Source of the DNA: Schizochytrium sp. TIO01
Lineage: Eukaryota; Protista; Bigyra: Labyrinthulomycetes
Reading direction: 5' to 3'
Assembly: GCA_004764695.1 (NCBI GenBank)
Contig: SMSO01000032.1
Coordinates: 8,774,483-8,838,482 of the forward strand
DNA length: 64,000 nucleotides
Under the pieces are notes generated by a model. That model had not been told where the DNA came from, did not search any database, and saw only the letters and a list, made by a program, of their open reading frames with translations. Position numbers and translations under genes: made by a program. Positions 9,250-17,464 of the stretch are shown piece after piece. Each line of letters opens with the position of its first letter. The first letter of the stretch is position 1.

Positions 9250-10612
9250 GTGCGAGCTTGGATCTTTGCACACATTGAGGACCGATGCCTGTTGTTTCCT
9301 TCTTATCTTTGAAAAGAAAACAGAACGTCTGAGTATGATCGGTTCTGATATATGTGGTATCTAGCACCGTTCTACGGAGAACACCTTGCAGAGGTAGATA
9401 ATATGACCACGATGGTGCTAATTAAACCTGAGGCCTGCTTTCTGCAAAGAGGTTCGCGTGGCAAGAAGCCATTGGCAAGATATAATGCTGCACGGTTTTC
9501 GAACCTCAAGTAATGCGAGTTTGCATTGGTGCGAAGAATATGCATGCGAAGAAGCATAGAAGCAAACGCTGACTTTCCCTGCCTTGGACTTTTCATACTA
9601 GTAGGACGTGCGAATTCGCATGCACAGCACAGAGGTCTCCATGAGATTTTGCGCTTGAAGCAAGAGTATAGGACAATCTCAGGAACAGGACCTTGTGCGA
9701 ATTCTGTGGTGCGCTGAGCAAATCGTTTCGTGCAGCAAAGTCTCATGATTATCAATGGTCATTCTCATGACATTATGGCTGAAGTAAGCAACAGATGATG
9801 AATCTGCACGGTTACGTCCAGTTTTCGTGAGTTGTGCTTTTTCACACGACTGCAACATAATGAGCAACACTAGAAGGCTATGCGAATTTGATGGCCACAA
9901 TGAGAGAATAAGCATGCGAAGAAGCTGCACGGTTATATCCAATTTCGTAAGTTAAATTGACTACAACTTATAAAGGTTGTGCGAATTTGAGCAAACAAGG
10001 AAGGACTAGCATGCGAAGAAGGTGCACAGTTACCTTTAGTCTCCATGCATATATTTGACTGCAACTTACAAGGGTATGCGAATTAAAATAAGAAAATATT
10101 ACAGTATGCGAAGAAATTGCACGGTTACATTCTGTTTACGTGAGATAGTACTTCCCGTAATTGAGACTCATTGACGCCTACTCAGTGCAAATAGTGAGCT
10201 GTGCGAATTTGACAAGAATTGCTGTGTGAATTCGAGCACGAAACTAGGAAGATTCATCCATAGTTCGAAAACTTTCCTGAGCAAAATGGATGAAAAGTCA
10301 GCTAGGCCTGCATAGCATGCGAGTTTATGATTACTAGTATTGTCTGGAAAAGCATAGAAAGTCGTGCGAGTTTGCGAGGTTTGCTCAGCGTTCTCTTGCT
10401 TCAGTTATCTAGGAATGCGAGTTTTCTACTTCTAGAGAATACTTGGGAAGGCTTAGGTGGCGATGCGAATTTGCTGTTCTCATGACTTCCGCACGAGCTT
10501 GGCTTATGCGAGTTTACTGCTCTCATGACTTCCGCACGAGCTCAACTTATGCGAGTTTACTGCTCTCATGACTTCCGCACGGGCCTGGGTCGTGCGAGTT
10601 TACTGCTCTCAC
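9250..10612 (+). repeat. RTGCGAR motif domain: 20 same-strand copies, including a degenerate ~97-bp repeat (about 9800-10130) and a 43-bp tandem repeat (10463-10612)
   Basis: RTGCGAR at 9250, 9513, 9529, 9544, 9608, 9695, 9880, 9914, 9979, 10011, 10076, 10106, 10201, 10317, 10364, 10415, 10463, 10506, 10549, 10592. TGCACRGTT at 9489, 9805, 9926, 10023, 10118. Confidence 0.9.
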
Positions 10613-11183
10613 TTCTTCAGCATAGTGGAAAACTCAAGTTACCATGTTAACATAAAAGGGGCCGCCATATCAATGTGGGGGTCCATCGACAAGCTGGTGT
10701 CCGCAGAGCAACAGCAAACCCCAAACAGCTCAACCACAAGCAACCAAACACGCAACTAAACAAGCAACCAAACAAGTAAACAAACAAGTAAACAAACAAA
10801 CAATGACACCAGACCTACAAAAGTAGCGATTGCGTATCACGAAACTGCGGATCGGCATTGTACGAGATGCTTAAAACTTTAGTTTCAATACCAACGCAAC
10901 AACTGCGATGACGATATCCAAGTCCTTCGCGAGTCTCACCCAGATGGGTTGAGCAAACTAAGCAACGCTCGTGTACCTGGTGTAAAACATACCAGGGGCA
11001 CTCACTCGAACTCTACAACAAACGGTTGTTCGAGTCCTTACAATCTCTTGATGTATTGTCACAATTGTTGACCTCGGCCTACTACAATGCTGCAACAACG
11101 GTGCATTGCGATTGGTGCGCTTCACAACACTGGTGGTGCGACTTAATCAGCCTTCTAAGCATTTCCAGAAAGCTCGTTTATTC

Positions 11184-13564
11184 TTGGACAAGGCCATGCG
11201 AGGCCCTCCAATGCTTAGACGTGGCTTTCAGAAAGGGCTTACAGCCAAGGATCTGAGCCTTCTCATGTATAAAGGTAGTAGTTATCCAGCGATGGTCCTG
11301 GCTGGATGTTTGCTGTAAACTGACTTCTTATCGAGGTTTAATCAAGGTCACGTCTCCTTTGACGATGTCATCTGGCTGACTTACTTTACAAGAGAATCTC
11401 CGGGATTGACCACGCGAGGTCTTTCCCTTACTATGGGCTCTATTACGTTACGGAGGTCGTCTCCGCGGATTTGCATGTGAACATGTCTGTTAGATAGACC
11501 AAGCATAGTCTTTCTTTTCTAATACAAGATCTGTAGATATGAAAGAATGATGTACTGTTCGGAGCCGAGCCAAGGGAGGCCTTTTCTGAACTTTGAAATT
11601 CTAGAGTGACCAAGGGAGGTCTTTCTAATCGAAAACTTGTATACATCTTTCAATATTCGGCATTAAATCATGCGAAGTTTTCTCACGAAGCGTTATCTGG
11701 ATGCATTTATCTTCAAATTGATCAAGGGAGATCAACTTTGAAGTATTGAGGTTAGAAAAGCTATTTTACACCCCAAATGGTAACTGTAGCTGATTTTGCT
11801 ACTATCAATGGAGGCTCTGAAGCGTGTTTGCAAATTGGTCAAGGGAGACCTTTGTGTGTAACATCTGGGCACATCATCGACAAGCATATGAAAAGCACAA
11901 GTTCAAGCTGACAATGGATTATGGCCAAGGGAGGTCCCATATTCGCAAAAACTTTGTGTAGGTCAAAATAACTCATGCTACACTTGCCATTAGGGTTACT
12001 TTTTGTCTGATGAAGCTATGTGGATAATGACCAAGGGAGGTCCCACAAACAGCATCAGATATTGTGGCTGCAAAAGCGATAGGATACAACTGAAATTTAG
12101 ATGCGAAATCGTGACCAAGGGAGGTTCTTTTTCAGCTGATGAACTTATTAGTGTCTCTGTCCTTTTACAGTTTGGAGTTGAGATAAATGAGAAGAAAATG
12201 AGGGGAAAGTTGCCGAAAGTACTGTGCAGATCAAGGGAGATCTTCATGGCGCCACCGGCTCAAACCCTCTCTTTCTGATCGTCAACGTTTTGGGGGAACG
12301 GAGACTTGGGGCTCAACAAAAGGAGGTTTGATACATGCCCATTTCAGGTACACCAACATGATCAAGGGAGATCTGGTTAGCCTAAATTTGGTCCTGACAT
12401 ATTTTCTTTTTGTGGCACCACTTTGGAGACACATGCACAATCATAACCATCACTGTGCTTCGAATGTGATCAAGGGAGATCCTCGAGCATACATATGATT
12501 ATGACTTCATTGCATTATTGTTGGTATATTTGTAGCTTGAAGATGACCAAGGGAGGTTCCTTCATTCAACAAATAAAGACTACAAATTTTCGATGCCACG
12601 CTCACGCTCAGTAAACCTGATGAGACCAAGGGAGGTCCTTCAAGTTACTGTGCAGAACTATACTGTGTGCTTGGGCTCTGTATGTAGGACAAAAACCAAG
12701 GGAGGTTTCCTACGCGTGGATCCAAGACACTTTAAATTCTCCTCTCAGTCAAGCCTCCTCCTCAACTTTTCTTCATTGAGTGAAAACACAAGATACAAGT
12801 GTCCTAGCATGAAAACAAATGACCAAGGGAGGTCTTTTATGTCTTCGACACACAAACCCGTGTTTGCTCTCCTTAAGGCAATGGTGAATGACCTTATGCA
12901 TGTCAGTTTTTCGACAAACCCTATTCACAAGACTAAGGGAAGTCCTTTGTGATGATGGCCACGTCTATGCGCTGTATGCATGTTTATTTATTGTGTGAAG
13001 AATTTGAGCCAAGGGAGGTTCTTTCTGCGTGCAATAAAGCAACTCCTTCAGTCTTCGCCCGAACCAATATAAACGTCCTCAATTCACAGCTATCACCTAT
13101 CTGTGCACTTTTCCATCACATCCAACTCCGATCATCCCTATCTCAACTTTACAATCAGTAAGATGACTACAAACTAAGTGACCCATAGTCTTCTGCCCAC
13201 TACCAATCTCCAGTAAATCGCTGCACCTAGCATCTTGTGAACGACACGTAAGTATTGTCCAAGGGAGGACTTTCCAAACTCGTGGCTTTCACAATATGCT
13301 ATAGATTTTGAAGGATATGCTGCAACGTCGAGCACCATCTCTGCCCAAGGGAGGACTTTGATGCATTTGCCAACACATTGTTGCCTTATCCTGATTGCAC
13401 ATTTTTCATACGCCAAGGAAGGCCTGATATACTGTGAGATGAGTAATAGGTCAAGACTTTAAAGTTCCACTTTATTATTCCCAGGGATCTGACAGAGTAA
13501 ACCATACTGCCATCGTTGAACAAAGTTCATGCATGACCAAGGGAGGTTTCATACTATGAGCTTT
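11184..13564 (+). ncRNA. Putative structured non-coding RNA domain: array of ~22 stem-loops with an AAGGGA hexaloop (19 exact, 3 loop variants)
   Basis: AAGGGA loops at 11572, 11612, 11724, 11841, 11927, 12033, 12117, 12233, 12364, 12472, 12549, 12628, 12698, 12825, 12935, 13011, 13261, 13347, 13539; variants ATGCGA 11196, ACGCGA 11412, AAGGAA 13415. Flanking 4-bp stems show compensatory changes and G-U pairs on the + strand. No credible ORF. Confidence 0.8.
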
Positions 13565-15140
13565 CACAACGTGCAGCGTCCTCACCTGGACATGTCTTCT
13601 ACACTCTTCTGTCTCTGAGTTACCCGTGGCACGGTCTATTTTATTGACCTATCTATTTTTTTTTTCTAACCCTTGCTTTCAGCATGTTCAAAGGCCAAGG
13701 GTCGAGTGCGGCCTTGGTTAGGTAGGGCCTTTGGGATGCGGCCACGAACGCTAGAAAATTTTCGCCAAATACCTTATTTGTAGCAAGGTACGCGCAACTT
13801 ACGATAACCAAGTAAATTGTGTGAATTGCTTCTATAGTGGCACCCAAACTTTAAGTACTTAAAACACAGAACACATTTTGCTTATATATTTTCATTTCCA
13901 CTTCGTTTCAGTTCTTACTTTTAATACAACTCTGAAGGCTTCCGAACATTGCAGTATCAGCACTGGCAGCTTTCCAAGTGCTTGCTTCCCTCCTTTTGGT
14001 TATCATTATTATGATTGCATAATTATCATTATCATTCTTGCTATTATACTTATTAAAATTGTCCCGACTCGGCAACACCAAGAAAGAACTCTAAATCGAA
14101 GACTCTCGGGGACCTTCTTAACGTCTACCTTTGACAATGTGTAGGTCCCGTGAAGCAGCGTGTAGATCGTTTTGGTTCTTCTTCAACATGGTTACTTTCA
14201 ATTTAAGTCTGATAGCTTGGAGTCGTACAATCCTCAGTCGGATAAAACTCTCGTAAGAGTCTCTGAAAGACGTTGAGAGGTAGCTCGGAGCAATGTTCAG
14301 CAATAGAGAGGTTGTTCAAATCGTCATACGTTTACGATAGCGTGGTGGTTTGGAACGCCACAGTGAGAGCTTCGTTTCAGACTAGTGTTACGATGTGTGA
14401 GAGTGACTTCGTTTATGATATGTGAACTGATTGCGAGCTTGCAAAATCTGAGAATGTGTATTGTCAAAAGGAAAGCAAGAGACAACATGGAGAGGAAAAT
14501 ACAATCGTTGGCAAGAAGATAGGGACAATAACAATTAAATATTGAGAGAAGCAAATGAAATGTCGCATGAAAAGTGGGGCTGATGATATTAACAGAGAAA
14601 CAGTTTCAGGATTTTTTTATTTTTTTTTAATTTGAAGCTACAAAGGAAGATTTTAGTCACAAGATCATCAGACAGGGAACAGATGTCAGAGTGGTGGAAA
14701 CCTCTACATAGATCTTAGTGAATGCAGTTGAAGAGCTCTGCTAGTACTTCGTCGAGGGTAACCCAATAATCTTTTAGTGGCGGCAGCAAAAACAAGAGCA
14801 GCGGCTGGAACGTTTCCCTTGGTGAAAGAATCCAATATAATGCTATGCTGCAAAAAGAAATCACTTTAAAGTGTATGAGTTCTGTGATGGGCTCGTTCTT
14901 TTCTTTTTCTTTTTTTTTTGCGTGATGCGCACATTTGATTTCCACATGCTGGGGTACACAGGGCAAAAGCGTCGTAGACAGGTTGTACAGGGCTACTCAA
15001 GTTTCTTGCTAGTGATGTGTGTGTGTTGGGGTGGGGGTATGAAGTGGGTTTGTTTGAATGTATGGTCGGGTTGCAGTCCTATTGTTTTGATTCCATGAGG
15101 GCGTTGATATGTTTGGCTCGCGTGCCTGCGAAAGAGGTGT

Positions 15141-15659
15141 TTAGACCTTCTCTACAAGGGACGTCTCAAGATCTAATGCGGGGTTTTCTGCACCCCCATC
15201 CAAGTCTATTGAGTTGGCCTTGTTGTTGGTATTAATGCGGCTGTTGAGCACGAACAGACCAATGATGAAGCCAAAGATGCCCAAAAATCCCGATACGAGA
15301 GCAAAGATTGCAATCGTGCGGGGTTGCATAACGCGCTTTTCCTCAGGCAGGTGGGCCTCGCGCGATCTGAGGCAATAGGTGCTCACAGCCATGAAGATCA
15401 GCGAGACGGTTACTGCAACGAGCATGCAGTGGTAAGGATAATTTTGTGTGCAGCGGATTGAAAATCTTTGGACCTTGTTGATCATGTCCTCGAGCTCGTC
15501 ATACTCATGGAGATTGTCCAGCACAGATGCCTTGTTTATCCATGGGCGGCTCACGCACTGAATTACAGTGGAGAAAATGTAGCATCCCCCGCTCTCGCAT
15601 AGATTCTCGCAGCAGCTGTCCTCTGCGCTGTAAAACTCAAGTGATTTGCAAAGAGGCAT
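15141..15659 (-). CDS. Small membrane protein with N-terminal 6-Cys module and TM segments (paralog of 25451-25927)
   Basis: ATG at 15659 (aaaATG). C-x11-CC-x3-C-x4-C-x8-C; shares REAxLPxExRV and GxxGFI...INxNxK with the paralog. Confidence 0.75.
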   Translation of the reverse strand: MPLCKSLEFYSAEDSCCENLCESGGCYIFSTVIQCVSRPWINKASVLDNLHEYDELEDMINKVQRFSIRCTQNYPYHCMLVAVTVSLIFMAVSTYCLRSREAHLPEEKRVMQPRTIAIFALVSGFLGIFGFIIGLFVLNSRINTNNKANSIDLDGGAENPALDLETSLVEKV

Positions 15660-16323
15660 TTTTCTGTTCGTCACCTCGACTCACGGAAGCAACAGCAGCA
15701 GCCGAATCTACAACGCTAATAATCCTCCACTCTAATGGTCCTGTTTGTCTCCGCTACAGGTGGAATGTCTGTTAGCGAGCTGATCCGTCGGCCCGAGCTT
15801 GTCCAGATAGCGCAGCAATCGAACGAGTGATGATAACGGGAGTGAATAAATTGGTACAAAAGTCACCCCTCCCAAAAGCAGAAGACCTTCTCCACAAAGG
15901 CAGACTTGCTAAGCTAAACACGGCCAGAATTAATTCTTGAGACTTGAACAAGCCTCGAAGCGTCCCTCTCGCGGTAGGCGGGGCGCGTGGTTCTGCTCCA
16001 CTATACTCCTCAGAGAGCGGAGACGAGCAAGAGAACCCTGGCTACGGTACGAGCAGCAGCGACAACGCTTTACAGCTACTGTAATAGTACAAGACTCTCA
16101 GGCAGCCGCACGCTTTGCGGTCTAACACTCTAACTCCGTCGCTCGCCGCGTACTCCAGGCAGGCAGCCAGGGGTACCGGCTTGTCCACCGCGGGCGTGCT
16201 TCTCTGTCGCGGCAGGCACGCAGGCAGGCACGCAGGCAACCAGCAAGCGTGAGCACCACGCTATCAGCGGGCGGAGCGACTTTGGAGGACCGAGCGGAAG
16301 TAGTTCTCAGTTTGCTTTCTCTC

Positions 16324-16324
<1 letters not shown>

Positions 16325-16378
<54 letters not shown>

Positions 16379-16495
16379 TTTCTTTTCTTTTAAACATTAT
16401 TTTAAATTTAAAGATGCTTGTTTGTTTGTTTGTCTGTTTATTTGTTTGTCTGTTTATTTGTTTATTTGTTTATTTGTTTATTTGTTTATTTGCTT
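16325..16495. repeat. Compound microsatellite (CTTT)n / (TTTG,TTTA)n
   Basis: Read directly; source of the spurious 305-aa and 239-aa ORFs. Confidence 0.9.
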
Positions 16496-17464
16496 TCCAT
16501 TATTTCATTTCATCCTCCCTTCCACTTCCTTTCGACACTTTCTGTGCTTTAAAAACGATTGTTCCATACCCAAAAAGGAAAGAAGAAGAAAAACAAAAAC
16601 AGAAGAAACAACAACAACAACCCTTTCTTTCCTTGCAGCGAGCAGGCAGCCTTCGCTCTTCAGCCATGCGTATGATCTTCTTGCTAGGCCCACGCTCCCT
16701 CTCACTTCAGGCCGTGCCTTCTTCCCTTCCTTCCTGCCTGCCTGCCTGCCTGCCTGCCTGCACCTCACGCCCCTGCGCATCCCCTTCGCGACTCCTGACT
16801 TTGACTTTCAAGATGGGTGCTTCTGCTCTTTCTTTTCTCTTTCTTTTCTCTTTCTTTTCTCTCTCTTTTCTCTTTTCTTTTATTGCTTTTCTCTTTCTTT
16901 TCTCTTTTCTCTTTCTTTTCTTTCGTGCAGTTGGAAAGCCCTACCGCCCCCTAGCAACTCCTACCGCCCCCTCTCTCGACATCAGCGTCGAGGTTCTCCA
17001 CGGCCTCTCAGGCTTGCATTCCTTCGAAGGCCCTCTGCACCGCCTGCGGCTGCCAGACCGTCTGGCCAGCTGGCCATCCAGGCACACCACACCAGCCAGG
17101 CACTGCCTCGCTTGCCTTCGGCCGCCAGCAGGCAGGGCTGATCTCGCCTGCCTGGGTCTGCTTTGATGCTGCGACGATTTTGATTCCCTCCGTCTCGCCA
17201 CCTCCATATCAAACTCGTATGAGACCTTCCGGCGCACACTGGAGTTCTTCGAGTTTGCGGCTGTTCTTTTCGCGCTTCGCATCTTCCCTTATCGACGCAT
17301 CTGTAAGAAAGAACAGGCAGAGGTCGTTTGGAACAGAACAGACAGAACCCACTCCCTCCAAAGGCGGTGCTACAAAACTGTCTGTTCTTTCTAGACTTGC
17401 GTTCTTTCTTTTCTTTGCGTTCTTTTCTTTGTGTTCTTTCATGAATGAATGATTGATTGATTGA

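Follow-up and report, generated by a model that had tools for sequence, protein, structure and literature searches.

What keeps one hexanucleotide, AAGGGA, unchanged in the loops of 19 hairpins within 2 kb of a protist genome, when the sequences between these hairpins have nothing in common? The question is raised by a 64,000-nucleotide stretch of contig SMSO01000032.1 of the labyrinthulomycete Schizochytrium sp. TIO01, here called the window. A first-pass annotation, made from the sequence alone, had proposed that the hairpin array belongs to a non-coding RNA that offers about 20 binding sites to one protein. We find that the hairpin array is real and statistically robust, that a module of about 19 nt has been kept while its surroundings drifted, and that the array matches no described RNA family. 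The depth of RNA-like sequencing runs places it within a putative unspliced transcript of about 3 kb. That this transcript is a multivalent factor-binding RNA, a scaffold or a decoy, is a reading to which we give about an even chance.

Results

Nineteen hairpins with one loop

AAGGGA occurs 55 times in the window, and 19 exact + strand copies lie between positions 11572 and 13544, over which the opposite strand has none. The recount agrees with the 19 loops in 2 kb of the first-pass annotation, and every stem was found as it had been listed there. The hairpins and their degenerate copies are given below (window positions, strand, 5′ arm/3′ arm of the upper stem).

11568-13548, + (as written): array proper, 19 hairpins, each consisting of 4-bp stem, hexaloop AAGGGA, 4-bp stem
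11568-11581, +: hairpin 1, AGCC/GGCC; stem of 3 bp on the + strand, its outer A-C becoming G-U on the − strand
11608-11621, +: hairpin 2, GACC/GGTC
11720-11733, +: hairpin 3, GATC/GATC; stem extends to 13 bp with one bulge
11837-11850, +: hairpin 4, GGTC/GACC
11923-11936, +: hairpin 5, GGCC/GGTC; inner G-U on the + strand; 5-nt 5′ bulge, then lower stem
12029-12042, +: hairpin 6, GACC/GGTC; 5-nt 5′ bulge, lower stems; strain polymorphism 12029 G>A in the stem
12113-12126, +: hairpin 7, GACC/GGTT; outer G-U on the + strand
12229-12242, +: hairpin 8, GATC/GATC
12360-12373, +: hairpin 9, GATC/GATC; 4-nt 5′ bulge
12468-12481, +: hairpin 10, GATC/GATC
12545-12558, +: hairpin 11, GACC/GGTT
12624-12637, +: hairpin 12, GACC/GGTC
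12694-12707, +: hairpin 13, AACC/GGTT; 4-nt 5′ bulge, 7-bp lower stem
12821-12834, +: hairpin 14, GACC/GGTC; top model score, 32.6 bits
12931-12944, +: hairpin 15, GACT/AGTC; closing pair C-G changed to U-A
13007-13020, +: hairpin 16, AGCC/GGTT
13257-13270, +: hairpin 17, GTCC/GGAC
13343-13356, +: hairpin 18, GCCC/GGAC; C-A on the + strand (mismatch), U-G on the − strand (pair)
13535-13548, +: hairpin 19, GACC/GGTT
11408-11421, +: degenerate copy, loop ACGCGA; stem and 3′ flank kept (GACC...GGTC TTTC); 11.9 bits with model R1
11497-11510, +: degenerate copy, GACC AAGCAT AGTC TTTC; its unit is 71% like unit 11602-11636
13411-13424, +: degenerate copy, GCC AAGGAA GGC; loop changed once more, at 13417, in the other haplotype

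Altogether three or four degenerate copies are present (11408, 11497, 13411 and perhaps 12316), chiefly at the edges of the array. The 8-mer core CAAGGGAG is found in 18 of the 19 exact copies, with 2.0 expected per 64-kb window, a maximum of 7 among shuffles and only one copy elsewhere in the window. The nineteenth copy, at 12935, reads TAAGGGAA and is the one in which the closing pair has changed from C-G to U-A.

Pairing and covariation were read from alignment A1, in which the 19 copies stand without gaps. A standard pair occupies 74 of its 76 stem cells (97.4%), and all four stem pairs have changed on both sides (11 cells), which bears out the compensatory double changes claimed for every stem position. 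The observed pairing or covariation score was matched by none of 500 shuffles. When, as a control, the 3′ partner was slid by 1-3 columns, pairing fell to 34-51%. Position −2/+7 is C-G in 14 copies and T-A in five and is discordant in none, a concordance with p of about 1 × 10⁻⁴ under independence by our own arithmetic from the column frequencies. A covariance model of the module (R1) scored all 19 array members at 23.3-32.6 bits.

A conserved island in drifted surroundings

Conservation is wider than the loop to which the first-pass annotation had confined it. The conserved island comprises about 19 nt, from about −5 to +13 counted from the loop start (U-GACC-AAGGGA-GGUC-YUUU), and drops to background level just outside. 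The modules are spaced irregularly, by 40-250 nt, and the spacers are mutually unrelated, as had been claimed: their mean local alignment score was 13.57 and that of shuffles 13.55. Tandem Repeats Finder reported no repeat in 11.3-13.7 kb. Since conservation is confined to about 19 nt, the spacers are at shuffle level and no tandem repeat is present, the module has been kept while its surroundings drifted. On the last two grounds, and because the units cannot be aligned over their whole length, a satellite or tandem repeat was rejected.

Faint traces of tandem duplication with a unit of about 106-117 nt are nevertheless left. One of them is the pair 11915-11939 and 12021-12045, 92% alike over 25 nt; the segments 11491-11525 and 11602-11636 are 71% alike, and with the pairs 11516/11622 and 11994/12123 the range is 71-73% over 25-35 nt. 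The simplest history starts from an old tandem array, of which the 19-nt module alone was maintained. Strain differences across the array amount to 16 single-nucleotide polymorphisms (SNPs), one of which falls inside the islands where 2.9 are expected; the difference is not significant and the polymorphisms are too few to test selection.

Structure beyond the upper stem

The lower stems that the first-pass annotation had described in single copies are real in aggregate. When the loop and closing pair were constrained, folding was better with native than with shuffled sequence on either side (mean z −1.35, t-test p = 3 × 10⁻⁵), with 15.2 enclosing pairs for native and 11.3 for shuffled flanks. 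With ±70 nt of context on the + strand, the closing pair had a probability of 0.76 between native and 0.29 between shuffled flanks (p = 2 × 10⁻⁵); the corresponding values on the − strand were 0.92 and 0.51. When 2.3 kb were folded as a whole to minimum energy, 16 of the 19 loops formed hexaloop hairpins.

In + orientation an architecture recurs that consists of a lower stem of 4-9 bp, a 5′ A/U-rich bulge of 1-6 nt, the 4-bp upper stem and the loop, the 3′ arm running from the upper into the lower stem without a bulge. On average a unit has 15 pairs within ±25 nt, and several units reach an imperfect stem of 18-22 bp in the global fold. Because the stems covary, the lower stems are real, the hairpin probability depends on the native context and the spacers are unrelated, the results support the earlier claim that selection acts on a single-stranded hairpin and not on a satellite or a double-stranded DNA site.

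Transcription and coding potential

Two features describe the putative transcript and its left edge.

10961-13868, strand not assigned: unspliced transcript of about 2.9-3.1 kb, from RNA-like assemblies, holding the whole array; its left end abuts a 3-copy repeat
10832-10990, strand not assigned: 159-bp segment at the transcript edge, 100% identical to loci in contigs C35 and C6 (L031:1501-1659; L033:1501-1659)

No sequencing run is recorded as RNA, and the run type was guessed from assembly totals of 21-49 Mb against a genome of 64 Mb. In run X1 a single 2905-nt contig covers 10961-13868 at an even depth of 12, and depth is zero at 9700-10684 and at 14034-14427. Runs X5 (contigs 11005-11673, 11728-13438 and 13457-13954) and X11 (pieces ending at 13865), which are from other studies, repeat this picture, and run X3 gave a low background throughout the region. 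RNA-like assemblies covering 10.96-13.87 kb thus come from at least three studies (P1, P4 and P6). Over 9700-15600 no joints were detected. The depth contrasts argue that the runs are indeed RNA data and that the array lies inside an unspliced transcript separate from its neighbours. Of the + strand transcript that the first-pass annotation had asked for, transcription as one unspliced RNA is supported by the X1 contig; folding energies, wobble counts and a strain SNP do not settle the strand, as detailed below.

The 159-bp segment limits the mapping of the left end, and the other two loci that carry it are more strongly expressed. A recent duplication or conversion is its probable origin. Its copies in C35 and C6 are located about 0.8 kb downstream of a kinase-like open reading frame (ORF), and these two loci are 98.8% alike over 3.2 kb.

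The longest ORF in the transcript has 119 aa, the hairpin spacings fall in all three reading phases and no transcript ORF gave a Pfam match. A protein-coding repeat was rejected on the length of this ORF, the lack of a constant phase and the lack of a Pfam match. An exact look-up of the array ORFs returned one Logan ORF on record, which is the sole member of its cluster.

Both strands fold

Summed constrained energies were −242 kcal/mol on the + and −246.6 kcal/mol on the − strand, with 12 of the 19 units slightly better on the − strand (Wilcoxon p = 0.47). Five wobble-only pairs are present on the + strand and two on the − strand. The first-pass annotation had used the G-U pairs to argue for the + strand, and its five G-U pairs do require that strand, being A-C on the other. 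The argument is weak all the same: the two stems that it had called imperfect (11572 and 13347) are A-C or C-A on the + strand and G-U on the − strand, and the energies are equal. The hairpin probability given above is, if anything, higher on the − strand (0.92), and the strain SNP 12029 G>A keeps the stem paired on the − strand only. In favour of the + strand, its two mismatches sit in peripheral copies near the decaying edges, whereas the five mismatches of the − strand include central copies. Poly(A) signals, contig ends, folding energy, wobble pairs and hairpin probability gave no decisive strand call. We lean slightly towards the + strand for the RNA.

Search for relatives

The array DNA is single copy in the 64-Mb genome. 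Genome-wide the pattern RNYCAAGGGAGRNY had 118 matches, 18 of them in the array, and its reversed control had 201. A search of the same 64 Mb with R1 yielded 33 matches; 19 are the array, and four others of at least 23 bits had E = 0.1-1.2, which is about chance level. Neither pattern nor covariance-model searches of this genome found a second array or an excess of dispersed copies. The covariance model that the first-pass annotation had suggested for this purpose therefore leaves the array as the only cluster.

That annotation had recognised no family in the motif, and the comparison with Rfam is in line with this: no match was obtained in the window at the gathering score, and none over 10500-14100 even at E ≤ 5. 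The small nucleolar RNA (snoRNA), microRNA (miRNA), ribozyme, TAR and iron-responsive element (IRE) families of Rfam gave no match, and neither a tRNA nor a transfer-messenger RNA was detected. A scan for three cores at array-like spacing returned at least 120 stretches from metagenomes and 42 from viruses. Among the matches listed, six with paired flanks (L074, L123, L137, L109, L133 and L120) were rejected as ordinary tandem repeats with conserved flanks, and the inspected paired-flank candidates contained no relative of the array. Full-text searches for the motif or for long non-coding RNAs of Aurantiochytrium returned nothing relevant by title and abstract.

The DUF1295 protein encoded 8 kb upstream has a 100% identical counterpart in MMETSP, JGI and EukProt; the next-best match to its gene, at 61%, is from the thraustochytrid Hondaea fermentalgiana, with none closer in the collection. 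Another locus, L197 (G000:C31:7912700-7918700), contains at about 15-980 a tandem repeat with core GTCCGCAGTG in 11 and CTGGTATAT in eight copies, which is unrelated to the AAGGGA module.

Discussion

A candidate multivalent RNA

In the reading that we follow, the locus would encode a long non-coding RNA, some 3 kb in length, on which the module is displayed about 19 times. Each copy has a lower stem, a one-sided short A/U-rich bulge and an upper stem of 4 bp capped by the invariant hexaloop. One such RNA could then be occupied many times over by the same trans-acting factor, most probably an RNA-binding protein that recognises both sequence and shape, for which it would serve as scaffold, assembly platform or decoy. 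The continuous 2.9-kb contig with silent flanks, in runs that are RNA-like by guess, is the transcript that such an RNA would leave. That a protein reads the loops and that multivalency is the purpose are both steps that we infer. The core of the module on the + strand resembles hnRNP A-type purine motifs, and the UCCCUU loop of the − strand resembles the sites of poly(C)-binding KH proteins.

The first-pass annotation had compared the array with the bacterial RNAs that titrate CsrA. CsrB/CsrC and RsmX/Y/Z indeed share with it many purine-rich GGA loops closed by C-G, variable stems, their location in one non-coding RNA and the logic of multivalent capture. However, the locus is eukaryotic and nuclear and its RNA has 3 kb and not 100-400 nt. 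Its loop is AAGGGA in all 19 copies and not ANGGAN, with GGA shifted by one position. CsrA (PF02599) had no match in six frames of the 64-Mb genome, in a search in which the positive controls matched. A decoy small RNA of the CsrB/RsmZ type was therefore rejected, there being no CsrA gene, no Rfam match and a different loop register; what stands of the analogy is the logic of GGA motifs displayed in loops.

The nearest eukaryotic functional analogues are the long non-coding RNAs with repeated motifs. The Xist A-repeat, roX1/roX2, the Pumilio sites of NORAD and meiRNA of Schizosaccharomyces pombe are single-copy non-coding RNAs with many short elements and fast-evolving spacers, and in Xist repeat A and roX the element likewise lies within a conserved stem-loop. 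These RNAs differ in that they have 8-25 sites with known binding proteins, the motif is another one and the organisms are unrelated. IREs, five of which occur in the 3′ untranslated region of the transferrin receptor, are likewise bulged hairpins that recur in one RNA, each with a hexaloop of specific sequence on a short upper stem. In contrast to the array, their loop is CAGUGN, the upper stem has 5 bp and the bulge is a single C; moreover, the array gave no IRE match in Rfam and its host RNA is non-coding.

A further likeness, for the + strand only, may serve as a lead: HIV-1 TAR also has a lower stem, a 5′ bulge, a 4-bp upper stem beginning with GA, a hexaloop ending in GGGA and 3′ pyrimidines. 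The first two loop bases are AA in the array but CU in TAR, which makes the cross-loop C-G pair of TAR impossible. The bulge is A/U-rich with 1-6 nt and not UCU, and the module occurs 19 times within a cellular RNA, with no Rfam match at E ≤ 5. It is tempting to speculate, although we consider it rather doubtful, that the array is an independently evolved protist counterpart of CsrB or of the Xist repeats, with about 19 TAR-like bulged hairpins capturing or assembling one RNA-binding protein. This protein might be encoded by the host or by the mirusviruses with which this organism is persistently infected.

If this is true, stramenopiles would gain their first described hairpin-array riboregulator; to our knowledge, next to nothing is known of the regulatory RNAs of the heterotrophic members. 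The case is unusually clean: only a structured module of 19 nt has escaped the drift to randomness, and it is a ready-made bait for its partner. Aurantiochytrium limacinum is culturable, is an industrial producer of docosahexaenoic acid and has been the subject of many public RNA-seq studies, and the prediction is therefore directly testable. The partner, if found, would indicate that multivalent hairpin decoys or scaffolds, as in bacteria and animals, arose in protists too.

Several observations weigh against a multivalent factor-binding RNA. The RNA nature of the runs is a guess that has uneven depth as its sole backing, and expression would be modest, with a depth of about 12 as compared to 261 at the gene next to it (from 14620). 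Folding favours neither strand, and the displayed loop would be AAGGGA on the + strand or UCCCUU on the − strand. The covariation all comes from paralogous copies that share a single locus in one species complex. Elsewhere in the genome the motif shows no enrichment (100 matches, 201 in the reversed control), and 9 of 30 sampled dispersed copies were fully paired where about 21% are expected. Since there is no enrichment, there is also no sign of other RNAs with the site, as a classical sponge with competing targets would predict.

Alternative explanations

The transcript could instead be a polycistronic precursor, in which loop and stem mark the cleavage sites of an RNase III-type or other endonuclease and about 19 small RNAs are released from arms or spacers. 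In yeast, AGNN tetraloops mark the sites of Rnt1p. In favour of this, several units reach imperfect stems of 18-22 bp in the global fold, and the unit spacing of 70-130 nt is within the size range of small RNAs; the fixed distance from loop to first bulge, set by the 4-bp upper stem, would suit an enzyme of the ruler type. Hairpins of the miRNA type call for stems of about 20 bp or more; the mean is 15 pairs within ±25 nt, and a few units reach about 20 bp. However, many units have only 12-15 bp and large internal loops. The spacers have no common motif, the hairpin arms match no other locus of the genome and Rfam gave no snoRNA, miRNA or ribozyme family. The transcript was seen as one continuous 2.9-kb contig at even depth and not as fragments, although contigs are compatible with processing. 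We regard a processing array as unlikely.

Two special cases of small or catalytic RNA were rejected. For a cluster of C/D box snoRNAs no consistent box pattern was found: TGATGA is present four times in about 20 units at varying positions and inconsistent offsets, and CTGA 14 times with 8.5 expected. A hammerhead core was dismissed as CUGAUGA occurs three times but is not followed by GAAA after stem II. As an observation in its own right, TGATGA occurs four times on the + strand (0.7 expected) and not on the − strand; the three CUGAUGA copies are at 12007-12013, 12136-12142 and 12617-12623 (+), one of them directly adjoining hairpin 12.

Alternatively, the element might act as DNA. The array would then be an old decayed tandem repeat in which a DNA-binding protein keeps a 19-bp island, as in an enhancer, an insulator or an origin-like iteron array, and the transcript would be a by-product. 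The uniform orientation of the copies follows from an origin by tandem duplication, of which the traces remain (92% at 11915/12021, 71-73% at the others), another decayed repeat array is found immediately upstream, and equal folding of both strands is expected if no strand is selected. A protein reading half-sites in double-stranded DNA would, however, conserve sequence and not complementarity, and position −2/+7 has changed from C-G (14 copies) to T-A (five) with none discordant. Nor do the variable lower stems outside the island and the hairpin-favouring flanks have a role in duplex DNA. Extrusion as cruciforms is impossible for 4-bp stems with 6-nt loops. This makes a DNA-level element, in our judgement, quite improbable.

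That the hairpins act in cis or as antisense, by slowing, pausing or terminating the polymerase or by stabilising an RNA that regulates the neighbour gene at 14.6-16.4 kb, is hardly credible: the array transcript does end 0.7 kb from the 3′ end of this about 20-fold more abundant gene, and on the + strand a pyrimidine- or U-rich tract follows each stem, but zero depth between both units in X1, X5 and X11 argues against overlap, and pausing or stability needs no invariant loop sequence.

Neighbourhood of the array

The second decayed repeat array occupies 9487-10611 (+) and contains TGCGA(A/G)TT 14 times at spacings of 43-185 nt. The block GCATGCGAAGAAG-N-TGCACGGTTA recurs in it at a unit length of about 97-100 bp, and 10463-10611 is occupied by a young tandem repeat (period 43 bp, 3.5 copies). 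In X1 this array has zero depth, and no hairpin with a conserved loop was seen in it. Between both arrays, at 10736-10803, lies a low-complexity tract of (ACAA)n and ACAAGCAACCAA, where reads appear to be cut.

Downstream, the highly expressed neighbour gene (14604-16400, −) has a depth of about 260-317 and a 177-aa ORF (15141-15674). This ORF had no homologue in 5.8 billion proteins, only a weak ABCC10_N-like match, and its product is a lineage-specific protein, probably of the membrane. The region from 16249 to 17166 is CT-rich and of low complexity, with long spurious ORFs on both strands (CLFV/FLS repeats).

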